From Bugula neritina (Eukaryota > Animalia > Bryozoa), in assembly GCA_964035545.1 (NCBI GenBank), contig OZ037773.1, forward strand, positions 9,887,751 through 9,951,750: 64,000 bases of DNA. The letters run 5' to 3'. Position numbers and translations under genes: made by a program. Shown piece after piece: positions 25,395 to 40,575 of this stretch; positions within the stretch are counted from its first letter, which is position 1; each line of letters starts with the position of its first letter. The notes beneath the pieces were generated by a model, which had not been told where the DNA came from, ran no database searches, and saw nothing but the letters and a program-made list of their open reading frames with translations.

Positions 25395-28300
25395 TCAAGA
25401 AGCCTCAACGTCACATATCCAGTAGTCCATAACGCACATTGGCTGACCATCTGACTGAGGGTTATCTATGAAATCGCATCTACAGCTGTATTAAGGAATA
25501 TAATGTAAGTTTAGTGGCTTACACATGCACAATTATAATAGATACTAAAATGGCATCTGTTATTATAGTTTATAGCTGATGTATATAATAATAAGTTATA
25601 CTGCAATTGTAATATACACAACTTTGAATATACATTTTGAAGCTTTTATAGCTACAATTGGTTTTATCTTGTAAATGAAAAAGCAGCAAATTGGAATTGC
25701 TACAAATGTAAAATTTATCAAGCTGGCATATATATATATATATATATATATATACATATATATACATATACATATACTTACGAATATGAATTATTGCCTT
25801 TTTCTTTCTTTACAACCAGATAAGCAACAGTAAGTTGACTACCATGGCAACTAACCGAAACAATCTTTTTCTACAGTAAAGTATGAAACGGTCTTATAAC
25901 TGCCTGATTTAATCATGGCTACAGAAAAAAACATTTGCCAATGTTTTTGACATATTTTTTTATGTCAATATACTTTGAAAATTTTTTTAGTAAATTAAAC
26001 TTATAGAAAACAAATATTGCCCTGAAATTTTATCTGTAATAGAAATTAACTATACTTTGCAACAAGCTTTTTGAAGCTGCAAAAAATAAAATTCCTGGTT
26101 TATTAACTAAGGTTTTATAACCCTATATATATATGAACAATCATATAAGTGATAAAACATGATATATAATGAGTAGTTTGGTGATGCCACTTAATACGAT
26201 ATGTTCAAATCTAATGTATATATGAATTGCCGGCTTTTATTCAAGGCAATAAATGGCTATCCTTTTATTTCTTTTAAGTAGCTACAATTATTGCTTGAGA
26301 GAGTGTTAATACAGAGACTCTTTGAAATACTGCTGCTACGACTTGTTTTATGTGAAAGTATGCAATTTTGCAGAACTATATACTGTTAAATTTTATAGGC
26401 TTTGTTATTATGCCTTATTTAGCATAGAACACACAAATAACTTGCCAGCTTTATAAATCTTACAACTTTAGGTAAAAGATCTGCTCACTTTCAAACCCGT
26501 GTCAAAAATTGCAGTTGTTGAGGCGCCATCCGATTTTAATATGAAATCACGAGAGTGTTTGCACAATTGTGGGTCGATAAAACCAGGGGAGCCCTGAAAA
26601 GATAAACCAATTATGTAAAAAGAGTAAAAGATCATAATCAGATAAATTTATCAGCTATACTGCATGCAGTAGGTGTGGAAGAATTTCCATAACATTCAAC
26701 ATTATCTTATTTAATAAATATATTCTGCATCGTAGCATTTTTGGCATTAATAATTGTTGAATTGTTATGATTATATAAAGCAAATATAGAAATGTAGCAG
26801 CAATATAATATATATGTTAAAATAAAAGATACTACAATGCATATAATACCAATATGTTATACTTCAGCATAAAATACAGTCTGTTTTATACAATATTATT
26901 TAATATATTATGTATAGTAACTATACTACAAGAAAATGATGACTGATATATCATTTTAGGGTAATATATTACAATGTTTTTAGTATGTATATAATTTATA
27001 CTTGAATACAATTAACAAATGTAACCGTGTATAGTATATAAGTAAAAATATTATGATGATGAATACAATAAAATATTAGAATGTTTGATTATATGATAAT
27101 ATTTATAGCAATACATCATAACACAGTCGTAAAACTGTAATGCCATTTAAATAATAAATTTGGATATACGCAAATAATTTTAGTTAGAACTGCATGTTGA
27201 AGACAGCTAATATCTTGTATATATATTTTTTGAATGCAAATAAACTAGTAAAAAACAGAAATCAAACTAAATATAGCAGCAACTTACTCGAGGACCCTTG
27301 GCTCCCCTTGGTCCCTGAAATATTAACAAAGTTCCAAACTGCTGTATTATGTTCGCAATTTAACTAAATGCTAACTTTCGTAAAAACAAGAAACAATAAC
27401 AATTTGAAAGCACATTTTCTGAATTCACCTTATAATTGTTATGTAGATGTTTAAGTCAAGTCTATTTGACAAAAAAATCCAATCCGCTGAATTAGCTGCA
27501 ACACTCAGTCCTTTATTGTCATTATATAACTAACAATTTAATGTGCAACACAAATAGACAGTCTATAAATAGTAATTTATAAGGTTTTCATAAAGAATAT
27601 TATACTACAATTTTGTTTATTGTTGAAATTACTCTAAAATTTTTAGCAAATGTTGCCTTCCATGTCACTTGTGCTAGTTATAGAGCCCCACTAACCCCAC
27701 CCCTCCTTCCAGACACAGGTTTAAGACCATCAACACACATTACTAACTTATATTGAAGTATTGTAAAGGAGAGTTGTCTCTCCCAGTATCAATTGTGTAT
27801 ATTACATCATATAACATATAATTAAACTTGTTATATGAATAATCATTTATCGCCATTGAACTTACTGTTTGAAGGTCCTCCAACCATCTAATATTAGTTT
27901 GCATTTCACTTTCGAAATTGGAAAACTAAAAAATCAATAAGTTGTAGAGTTTAACTTGCTAACAAAAGCACACGTTAACACTCATTAACCTAAGCAAGTG
28001 ATTGTAGCCCATGTGAGTCCGTGCCCATATAATCAAGAATAAAATTCTTATAATGTTTTTATGGTAAAAGTGGTTTTGTTTGAAAGTTATATGATTCAAA
28101 ACAAGTATAAAAGTATAATATGCTTTCGATAAAATTAATTGTTTAAAGTTTTACAAGCTTTGCTTGCAACTCCTAGATATAAATTAAACAACATATCTAA
28201 TTAATAAATTTATAATCTATAAATAGACATTTGTCTAAATATGAACTCACTTTAGTGTTAAACTCATCTACTGTCTCACTTTGTTCTTTAATCTCTTGCT

Positions 28301-39500: not shown

Positions 39501-40575
39501 CTGGGTGGATCTAATGATTCGTGTGTGTTCTTTGGCCAGTTGGTCACATGACCATCTGAATTAGCAAACGAGCCACCATCTGAATTAGCAAACGAGCCAT
39601 TGTTGGGTAAATCAGAGGTTCCACTTATAGAAATTTTTAAACCAGCAGAGTTTGAGTACTCAGTTGTATCTTTAGTTTGTTTGTCTACTTTTTTGTTCTC
39701 AGATGAAGTTGTGTTCTCTATAAGTAGAGACCTGCAAAAAAGTAGCTACAATTGTTTTTGTTTGCAGCTTTTATAATCATAATATTTCAAAACAAAACTG
39801 CTTAGCTATAATATTGTAGATTTAAAATCTTGTTATGACATGTGATGCAATATATACTGCAGTAAGAAGACAATTCCTAGTTGCTCTACATATTATATGG
39901 CTTTTATTATATTATTATCACATATTTGCTTTACTTAATGCTGACCTTTCTTGTGTTGAGTGTTCATGCTGTATTTGACTTGTTAAAACAGGTACTCTAA
40001 CTAAGCTATACCGTATGTAATAATGACTATTCCATTGTGATAGCATGCAGCAAAATTACCATGAGGGCAGTAGATTCTTTTAAATGCTTGTTTGCAGCTG
40101 CATGGCAAAGTAACTGAGCTCTTATTATATACAGCCTAATTGCTAATAGGAGATAATTTTAATTAGAGTGGAAGCAATTGCTAGGTTTAAAGCCTTTAAA
40201 TATATATAAATATAAGTATACCATACTAAATATAAATATATGTTTAGTATGGTATTTTAATTTATTTTATAGTAACCCTAAAAATACAGTCGCAAAGCTT
40301 ATTAAAGTGAAATGAACCCAAGTAAAATTTAAAATTTAAAAAATTATCATAGCTTTCAACGCATTAATATATTATTTAACTCATCATGAGTCGAATCACT
40401 TGTTTTAAGTTAATTTAAATTAGCTTATTACAACATTTTACAATTTTTCTCCTATTGAAAATATTTAAATAATTAAAATGAGTTTTAATTATATAAGTTA
40501 AAAAATCTTGAAATTTGTAATATTTAGATAAAAGACTTACTCATTGGCAAAGCTTAACTCTGGATTGTCAGACAT
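33563..40575 (-). CDS. Cluster gene D: type II membrane receptor-like protein, ~552 aa, 15 exons; tandem duplicate of gene C
   Basis: Exons 40541-40575 (MSDNPELSFANE), 39946-39996, 39501-39731, 39086-39322, 38567-38710, 37999-38139, 37579-37695, 36718-36944 (TM), 36522-36565, 35956-36018, 35674-35733, 35386-35412 (GPKGVQGPR), 34931-35035 (GC donor), 34407-34498, 33563-33647 (CQCEF...CIMDYWKCEVP*). Total 1659 nt, open. Confidence 0.9.
33698..33915. repeat. (ATATT)n pentanucleotide microsatellite in the last intron of gene D
   Basis: Seen directly; source of the YYIIL ORFs. Confidence 0.95.
34561..34630 (-). mobile_element. 3' fragment of SINE family 1
   Basis: TATATAGCCGCTATCCCTTTGAGAGACCCCTG matches the tail of the 19695 copy (TATATAGTCGCTATCCCTGTGAGAAACCCCTG). 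Confidence 0.6.
36074..36492. repeat. (TG)n microsatellite, ~370 bp nearly pure plus degenerate flank, in a gene D intron
   Basis: Seen directly; the equivalent gene C intron (~28370-28600) holds a degenerate CA/TG-rich tract. Confidence 0.98.

Follow-up and report, generated by a model that had tools for sequence, protein, structure and literature searches.

Conserved tail and diverged six-cysteine head in two tandem, predicted type II receptor genes of Bugula neritina: probable contributions of constraint, exon-biased gene conversion and duplication age

Gene conversion in the KIR, LILR, Ly49 and Siglec receptor families homogenises some exons while the ligand-binding exons diverge, and several of these families contain sites at which ω, the ratio of nonsynonymous (dN) to synonymous (dS) divergence, exceeds 1. 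Bryozoans are colonial animals from which, to our knowledge, almost no immune or self-recognition receptors have been described. Here, a stretch of 64,000 nucleotides from the bryozoan Bugula neritina (contig OZ037773.1, positions 9,887,751 to 9,951,750 of the forward strand; from here on the window, whose own positions are used below) is analysed with respect to two neighbouring genes of its minus strand, C and D. Like the genes of the families named above, C and D are tandem paralogs with a sharp change point in silent divergence, a signalling and stalk-proximal part kept alike apparently by exchange and constraint, and a divergent, putatively ligand-binding part. Unlike them, they encode proteins of unrelated fold and membrane topology, and the ω of their head is below 1. 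Our reading, to which a probability of roughly 0.68 is given, is that C and D would be tandem paralogs of long standing, members of a Bugula-restricted family of five type II receptor genes, and that the contrast between tail and head would combine constraint on the tail, exon-biased gene conversion and a weaker constraint on the head.

A comparison of the window with itself reveals one collinear duplication (25379-32955 against 33547-40819), made of short blocks of 83-92% identity within a background of 55-75%. Gene models for both copies were predicted from C/D conservation and splice signals by reading the aligned copies exon by exon. Each has 14 coding exons and 535 codons with identical exon phases, and all introns are GT-AG, the sole exception being intron 12 of D with its GC donor. 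The reading frame of C is open from the ATG at 32677 to the stop codon at 25395-25397. An earlier examination of this DNA by a model (the sequence-only reading) had bounded the region of interest at 25395 and 40575, which correspond to the stop codon of C and the ATG of D, and the peptides that it quoted lie on the minus strand, at 26593 (C) and 35035 (D). The parts of the two genes are as follows.

25395..32677, minus strand: coding span of gene C; 14 exons, 535 codons, predicted type II membrane protein; all splice sites GT-AG.
29593..32677, minus strand: C exons 1-6, predicted cytoplasmic Ser/Thr/Pro-rich tail with the tyrosine motifs EDYL, GYAFI, SYDNI and NYATI; protein 90-96% identical to D, dS 0.17-0.56 per exon.
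29009..29235, minus strand: C exon 7, end of the tail (YTSI, YQSV, YSV), KKK stop-transfer and single transmembrane segment; 71/75 identical to D.
28400..28600, no strand: (CA)n microsatellite of C intron 8; read in gene direction, it shortly precedes the point at which dS changes.
27288..28675, minus strand: C exons 8-11, predicted extracellular heptad stalk and 27-nt collagen-type exon (GPRGAKGPR); the silent-divergence change point falls within exon 9.
25395..26593, minus strand: C exons 12-14, encoding the head (92 residues, six Cys, terminal CxC...C.MDYW.C), which shares 59% of its residues with D; dN 0.29, dS 0.72.
33563..40575, minus strand: coding span of gene D; 14 exons, 535 codons, exon phases of C; GC donor at intron 12.
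36718..40575, minus strand: D exons 1-7, tail and transmembrane segment; an ortholog contig (L002, see below) spans D exons 4-10.
36055..36500, no strand: (CA)n microsatellite of D intron 8, expanded; the D ortholog L002 has it too (2147-2408).
35386..36565, minus strand: D exons 8-11, stalk and Gly-X-Y exon (GPKGVQGPR).
33563..35035, minus strand: D exons 12-14, head.

From the N to the C terminus, the product of either gene consists of a Ser/Thr/Pro-rich, probably disordered tail of ~365 residues with many tyrosine motifs, a KKK and one hydrophobic segment (exon 7), a stalk of ~56 heptad-like residues (exons 8-10), the 27-nt collagen-type exon, which together with the start of the next exon gives four Gly-X-Y triplets, and a head of 92 residues over three exons, with six Cys and the terminal pattern CxC...C.MDYW.C. 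There is a single hydrophobic segment with the KKK on its N-terminal side and no signal-like segment at the N terminus, and the Cys-rich and Gly-X-Y parts are all C-terminal to the transmembrane segment. Based on the positive-inside rule, we infer that C and D would be type II membrane proteins, with the tail intracellular and the head extracellular. Moreover, the tail contains tyrosine motifs with the spacing of an immunoreceptor tyrosine-based activation motif (ITAM), YATI-x8-YTSI across the exon 6/7 junction, a sequence motif identical in C, D and the D ortholog.

Two side observations concern the gene models. Within intron 1, a block of ~85% C/D identity (32200-32267 in C and 39915-39982 in D, minus strand) carries an ATG followed by a GT donor; it was rejected as a start exon (C ~32200-32267), the phase being wrong in both copies and a 1-nt indel separating them, and may correspond to an alternative non-coding first exon or a regulatory element. 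The donor of D intron 12 lies at 34929-34930 (minus strand), reading AAT/GCAAGC in D and AAA/GTGAGC in C, the slash marking the splice site.

The sequence-only reading had counted by hand near-identical tail exons and a diverged head that keeps its Cys and DYW, and these counts are reproduced here. Between C and D, 36 of 39 residues are identical in the tyrosine-motif exon 6 (with 9.5 synonymous differences) and 71 of 75 in the transmembrane exon 7, against 19 of 35, 20 of 30 and 15 of 27 in the first, middle and last head exons. For the tail with the transmembrane segment (exons 1-7) as a whole, the identity is 331/369 (90%), against 54/92 (59%) for the head, where the six Cys and the DYW motif are all retained in both proteins. 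The ratio of nonsynonymous to synonymous differences (Nd:Sd) differs between tail and head (p=0.0016), being this contrast far beyond chance. Divergence was estimated by NG86 with bootstrap confidence intervals (CI), and some values are also given by maximum likelihood (ML) or YN00; for C against D, the values are the following.

Exons 1-8 (tail and transmembrane segment): dN 0.047; dS 0.25 (CI 0.18-0.33); ω 0.19 (CI 0.12-0.29).
Exons 9-11 (stalk): dN 0.16; dS ~0.8; ω ~0.2.
Exons 12-14 (head): dN 0.29; dS 0.72 (CI 0.42-1.31); ω 0.41 (CI 0.23-0.71; ML 0.47).

Silent divergence is thus far from uniform along the genes. The proportion of synonymous differences (pS) rises from 0.21 over exons 1-8 to 0.48 over exons 9-14 (Fisher p=7e-6), and the best change point falls in exon 9 (chi2 27), shortly after the intron 8 (CA)n tract. 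The sequence-only reading had said that a dS and an intron divergence rising along with dN would speak against selection on the head, and this is largely what is found: dS increases ~3-fold together with dN (0.25 to 0.72, p=7e-6), and the introns become less similar in the same direction. On a log scale, the 6-fold contrast in dN would be due in roughly equal parts to two causes, the tail exons being effectively younger (about half) and the head less constrained (about half).

The age of the duplication can be placed by an ortholog of one copy. A word search with the transmembrane exon returned the 127-residue product of an open reading frame from the JGI metagenome 3300002729, whose 2.8-kb contig is L002. 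This contig aligns to D over exons 4-10 at 84-89% identity, introns included, and it matches C well in exons only. These alignments show L002, a contig of a sister Bugula lineage called J from here on, to be orthologous to D rather than to C; therefore, the C/D duplication is older than the split of the two lineages. Intron divergence was measured by an alignment-score statistic calibrated by simulation with the D-J indel spectrum, which returns 0.15 for D-J as expected, and gives ~0.42 for C-D introns 1-7 and ~0.55 for C-D introns 9-13. This suggests that the two copies are about 3-4 times older than the lineage split. The description of C and D as recent duplicates in the sequence-only reading is therefore wrong, since their intron divergence (0.42-0.55) is ~3 times or more the orthologous value (0.15) and the duplication predates the split.

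A comparison of C, D and J over exons 4-10 reveals that exons and introns of the same genes have different histories. The aligned columns in which two of the three sequences agree against the third are distributed as follows (D=J≠C, C=D≠J and C=J≠D, in this order).

Introns 4-7: 292, 57 and 63 of 1052 columns, tree-like.
Stalk exons 9-10: 19, 3 and 4 of 123 columns, tree-like.
Tail exons 4-7: 28, 25 and 19 of 629 columns, star-like.

In tail exons 4-8, dS is 0.28 for C-D, 0.31 for C-J and 0.18 for D-J, and dN is 0.032, 0.040 and 0.042, respectively, so that in tail protein C is as near to D as is D's own ortholog. Relative to D-J, differences between C and D are 1.13 times as many in the tail exons and 2.64 times as many in the intervening introns (Hudson-Kreitman-Aguadé-like test, p=2e-4), and 3.0 times as many in the stalk exons. 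Moreover, tail dS between C and D (0.25-0.28) is below the intron divergence of the same pair (~0.42, or 0.48 in raw aligned columns), whereas between the orthologs D and J no silent deficit is observed (tail dS 0.18 against 0.15 in introns); the difference between synonymous and intron divergence is significant for C-D (p=0.003) but not for D-J. Because silent sites of the orthologs change at least as much as their introns, synonymous constraint cannot explain the low tail dS between C and D. Taken with the star-like exons and tree-like introns, this low tail dS suggests that exon-biased gene conversion has acted in addition to strong purifying selection. The simplest account would be a non-reciprocal exchange between C and D, mainly in exons 1-8, which ended near the lineage split. 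In the three-way comparison nothing indicates an exchange later than the split: C is no nearer to D than to J, and the C=D≠J and C=J≠D columns are similar in number. Homogenisation of the 5' half by conversion, proposed as an alternative in the sequence-only reading, thus gains support in a refined form, as an exon-biased process in exons 1-8 that is not detectable after the lineage split.

The (CA)n tract stands at the same site, intron 8, in C, D and the D ortholog, and a related tract is found in paralog B at 22985-23133, just after its first head exon. The tract of intron 8, which adjoins the change point in both C and D, may have bounded the exchange tracts.

A different history would involve no conversion: exons 1-8 with their introns would have been duplicated or exchanged only once, later than the 3' part, as a chimera or by one large unequal crossover, and purifying selection would have acted since. 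One clear change point, in exon 9 and adjoining the intron 8 (CA)n, is what such a block event would leave, and it would also fit an intron divergence lower on the 5' side of that point than on the 3' side (~0.42 against 0.55) and a divergence of 0.25-0.31, near the tail dS, when only well-aligned intron blocks are considered, a filter that is biased to similarity. However, the whole 5' introns (~0.42) exceed the tail silent sites (0.25), and this order is reversed between the orthologs (0.15 against 0.18). Also, introns 4-7 are tree-like and the exons that flank them star-like, whereas a single block event would treat both alike. For these reasons a single event is considered quite unlikely.

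Genes C and D belong to a small family, which provides a second view of the head. When the genome of 216,009,554 bases is searched with profiles of the first and of the last head exon, exactly five loci are returned, all of them inside the window (a B. neritina assembly of 216.00 Mb is described in PMC11480708). The three other paralogs are these.

9241..10809, minus strand: paralog A; head exons 10809-10696, 10249-10161 and 9325-9241, transmembrane exon near 13076-13267.
22807..23880, plus strand: paralog B; head exons 22807-22914, 23186-23274 and 23784-23880, transmembrane exon near 20716-20940.
53592..59013, plus strand: paralog E, placed by transfer of the B. neritina model KAF6034810.1 and covering the final nine coding exons; head exons 57412-57516, 57965-58053 and 58923-59013.

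All five paralogs have a transmembrane exon upstream and three head exons of identical phase, and the same three head exons, of 105, 89 and 91 nt, are present in KAF6034810.1, the annotated B. neritina ortholog of E. Head identity between paralogs is 24-34%, against 59% for C-D; the Cys, Y and W are invariant in the five, and A and E have H in place of the D of DYW. No sequence relationship connects the C and D tails with those of A, B and E. For E, the cytoplasmic part (46245-55023) is far longer than the annotated ortholog of 370 residues implies, and has tyrosine motifs of its own, NIYEEM and EYSTYSV.

A profile search of 1.84 billion representative proteins returned one true relative, the same KAF6034810.1 (P0002), a Bugula neritina 'hypothetical protein'; three further candidates (P0001, P0003 and P0004) were rejected as false matches driven by repeats. 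Word searches, both with the ectodomain of the E ortholog and with a mixed alignment that included C tail exons, returned the query protein alone. For orthologs of the C/D heads, a metagenome scan with a peptide profile of the first head exon gave 96 stretches that fit the pattern, none of which passed tblastn, and a scan with a degenerate DNA pattern on the middle head exon gave no match. As far as the searches reach, the family would then be restricted to Bugula.

A contig of the other public assembly (GCA_010799875.2, VXIV02000994.1; L001) is collinear with positions 42079-64000 of the window at 72-87% identity, mostly 81-86%; therefore, the KAF6034810.1 locus that it carries is the ortholog of E from a related lineage. 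At neutral sites (introns of D and E and ~22 kb around E), a divergence of ~15% separates the two public 'Bugula neritina' assemblies. Non-coding difference from the window is ~13-19%, both for L001 (against 42079-64000) and for the JGI host contig L002 (against 35672-38716), and two runs under the same organism label (X2 and X3) contain conserved tail exons only, at 90-95%. Species-level or cryptic lineages appear to be filed under one Bugula neritina name. In the NCBI annotation of the related lineage, the E ortholog (L001 1561-15919) is split into at least four models, of 117, 75, 126 and 370 residues, and no model contains head exons of A-D; the family is therefore invisible in that proteome.

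Whole-head Pfam searches and the modelling of fold and complex were run on the E ortholog (P0002) as a stand-in for C and D. Ten single exons of C and D have no match in Pfam, and the whole head of the E ortholog (P0002:270-370) yields sub-threshold noise only, with no SRCR, C-type lectin, TNF (PF00229), C1q (PF00386), C4 (PF01413) or Collagen (PF01391) match in hmmscan at E<=10. The C4 domain appears only as a language-model feature lead, with scores of 0.78-0.82 that are under the tool's own trust threshold. Searches of the PDB with both head-exon profiles were empty. On the other hand, the head in the ESM Atlas model of the E ortholog (P0002 280-368) superimposes on a cnidarian cluster with a TM-score of 0.82 over 87 residues, the next best being 0.61. 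This cluster has 135 members of ~379 residues, with collagen repeats in 55% of them. The match suggests, as a lead and not as a test, that the head could be related to an older, unnamed C-terminal domain associated with collagen.

When three copies of the E-ortholog ectodomain are modelled together, the interaction prediction score from aligned errors (ipSAE) is 0.71, against 0.00 for the best of three controls. The runs agree in at least 68% of contacts, and the predicted local distance difference test (pLDDT) with the partners is at least 72. Contacts follow heptad-spaced residues from 224 to 263, become continuous from 264 to 282 through the Gly-X-Y part and go on into the head. Of 30 proteins whose solved structure is a pair of one chain, 21 attain the ipSAE mark (7 of 16 among animals), and of 23 solved as single chains none does; these counts are only roughly applicable to three copies. 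The ectodomain is probably a trimer, an arrangement that the model supports and does not show.

Paralog E gives the cleanest test of constraint on the head because its tail has no paralog to convert with. Between the E orthologs of the two lineages, ω is 0.20 in the tail, 0 in the transmembrane part and 0.27 in the stalk, and rises to 0.92 for the head (ML 1.06, LWL85 0.79), so that the head (0.79-1.06) differs from the rest of the protein (0.26; Nd:Sd p=0.015). The claim that the head changes faster than the tail thus holds in protein and in relative terms, both for C-D (ω 0.41 against 0.19) and for the E orthologs (0.8-1.06 against 0.26). The head is the least constrained part of the protein, its constraint being estimated, after allowing for age, at 2-3 times below that of the tail. 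A mean ω near 1 with an invariant Cys framework would be compatible with some positively selected sites and equally with a loosely constrained surface.

According to the first of these possibilities, positive (diversifying) selection of an immune or allorecognition type would act on a ligand-binding head, and the tail would simply be conserved. This would account for a head ω 2-3 times that of the tail between C and D and, in the E orthologs, significantly above the rest, where a mean near 1 with invariant Cys would imply that some sites exceed 1. Exon 12 taken alone has ω 0.67 (CI 0.31-1.62; YN00 1.08), and the net charge of the head is -1 in C and +4 in D. Nevertheless, as a domain the head does not exceed ω of 1, neither between C and D (0.41, CI 0.23-0.71; 0.1% of bootstraps reach 1 and the proportion of nonsynonymous differences, pN, is below pS, p=0.002) nor in the E orthologs, where the values are indistinguishable from 1 and equally fit a relaxed constraint. 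Positive selection, towards which the sequence-only reading leaned in calling the pattern typical of ligand-binding regions of immune or allorecognition receptors, is not supported by these values. The climb of dS and intron divergence along with dN also argues against this explanation, as do the alleles of the C head: among the allelic differences listed in run X1, three are synonymous and one is nonsynonymous (S462L), so that among them C does not look like a hyperpolymorphic locus. Variants of the tail exons in the same run were rejected as polymorphism, since they mostly carry D's base and would reflect cross-mapping of the paralog or shared variation. Finally, mapping of variable residues on a structure model, which had been proposed as a check, places C-D differences rather more frequently outside the modelled trimer interface (46% against 29%), which would favour selection on the surface, but the contrast is not significant (p=0.13; for E, p=0.53). 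Diversifying selection on the head is in this way neither demonstrated nor excluded, and as the explanation of the head/tail contrast we hold it to be rather unlikely.

A relaxation of another kind would be the decay of a redundant copy, with early pseudogenisation of C or D. The raised ω of the head would fit a spare copy, and D has a non-canonical GC donor after its first head exon. However, both genes keep their frames of 535 codons, all splice sites, the six Cys and the DYW, the head ω is well below 1, and the D ortholog is intact over exons 4-10, with ω of 0.10 in the stalk. Also, C and D show roughly symmetrical identities to the outgroup paralogs. Decay is accordingly the least credible of these explanations, and very improbable.

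For the preferred reading, old tandem paralogs with exon-biased conversion, the sequence of events would be the following. Tail exons 1-8 would be under strong purifying selection (ω ~0.2) and would have been homogenised by conversion between C and D until about the lineage split, which would give them an effective age ~1.5 times that of the split. The stalk and head exons would have escaped conversion and show the full age of the duplication (dS ~0.7), and the head would be under a weaker constraint (ω ~0.4) with its Cys framework kept. Conversion of the tail would be tolerated, or even favoured, because both paralogs must fit the same intracellular partners, and conversion of the head would be blocked by sequence divergence or selected against because the two heads differ in specificity. 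At the protein level, the ectodomain would form a trimer with the head as its ligand-binding tip, and ligand-driven clustering would be read out by phosphorylation of the tail tyrosines and tyrosine-kinase signalling.

Several points weigh against this account. The three-way comparison is limited to C, D and J over exons 4-10. For silent sites alone, the C-D/D-J ratio is 1.45 and the contrast between exons and introns becomes borderline (p=0.05); silent divergence is only marginally patchy inside the tail (P=0.04), the introns show no more than a modest gradient (0.42 against 0.55), and the well-aligned intron blocks come near the tail dS, as mentioned above. With respect to the protein, the AlphaFold2 model of the head monomer is all-beta and poor (pLDDT 48), the trimer score may reflect a general likeness to coiled coils, and a receptor function is inferred from the architecture only. 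The structural matches of the AlphaFold2 monomer in the Atlas had only TM-scores below 0.5 and were disregarded.

The analysis also carries a caution of method. The C/D pair has the look of positive selection, yet with an ortholog and the introns as clocks about half of this look becomes a dating artefact of exon-biased conversion, and the same clock check is applicable to other mosaic paralog pairs of this genome. The neutral distance of ~15% between the two assemblies would be useful for codon-model tests.

A bolder interpretation, which is doubtful on the present evidence, is that the cluster would be a bryozoan invention, a trimeric, ITAM-coupled type II family with an unclassified beta-sandwich head under diversifying selection at its surface, a head possibly shared with the cnidarian collagen family. 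If this were true, lophotrochozoans would have independently evolved ITAM-coupled receptors for non-self or allorecognition, in which conversion keeps the signalling module uniform while the specificities diverge.

Regarding the known proteins of similar architecture, the class A scavenger receptors and collectin-12 (MSR1/SR-A, MARCO, SCARA5 and COLEC12) resemble the C and D products in being type II proteins with a single transmembrane segment and an extracellular part that runs from an alpha-helical coiled coil through Gly-X-Y repeats to a small, Cys-rich head at the C terminus, and also in the trimeric ectodomain, here a modelled one. In contrast, C and D have only four Gly-X-Y triplets with no Pfam Collagen match, a head with no SRCR or C-type lectin match at E<=10, a very long tail (~365 residues) with tyrosine motifs like those of an ITAM and of an immunoreceptor tyrosine-based inhibition motif (ITIM), and no sequence relatives found outside Bugula. 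Ectodysplasin-A and the membrane collagens XIII, XXIII and XXV share with them the type II orientation, a coiled coil next to the membrane, a part that resembles collagen and a C-terminal domain that is trimeric (for C and D, putatively so), although in C and D there is no TNF homology domain according to Pfam, the collagen part is far shorter, and the tail carries signalling motifs instead of being a short stub. The family thus combines an architecture like that of scavenger receptors and collectins with a head that stands outside the domain libraries and a tail with an ITAM-spaced motif.

An immune or colony-recognition role for these genes would be speculative, and we know of no link of this family to colony fusion. 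In colonial marine invertebrates, the allorecognition genes Alr of Hydractinia (PMC9546547) and fester of Botryllus (PMC12582321), whose products have ITAM/ITIM tails, are, like C and D, members of clustered, lineage-specific families with tyrosine motifs and a variable ectodomain. In those systems the proteins are type I members of the immunoglobulin superfamily or have other folds, and allelic polymorphism is extreme, whereas here there are five genes and, among the C-head differences listed, few and mostly synonymous ones. The head/tail pattern described here is familiar in multigene receptor families and the gene family itself is undescribed; next to these systems, the cluster offers for bryozoans a concrete candidate receptor family that is small enough to test.

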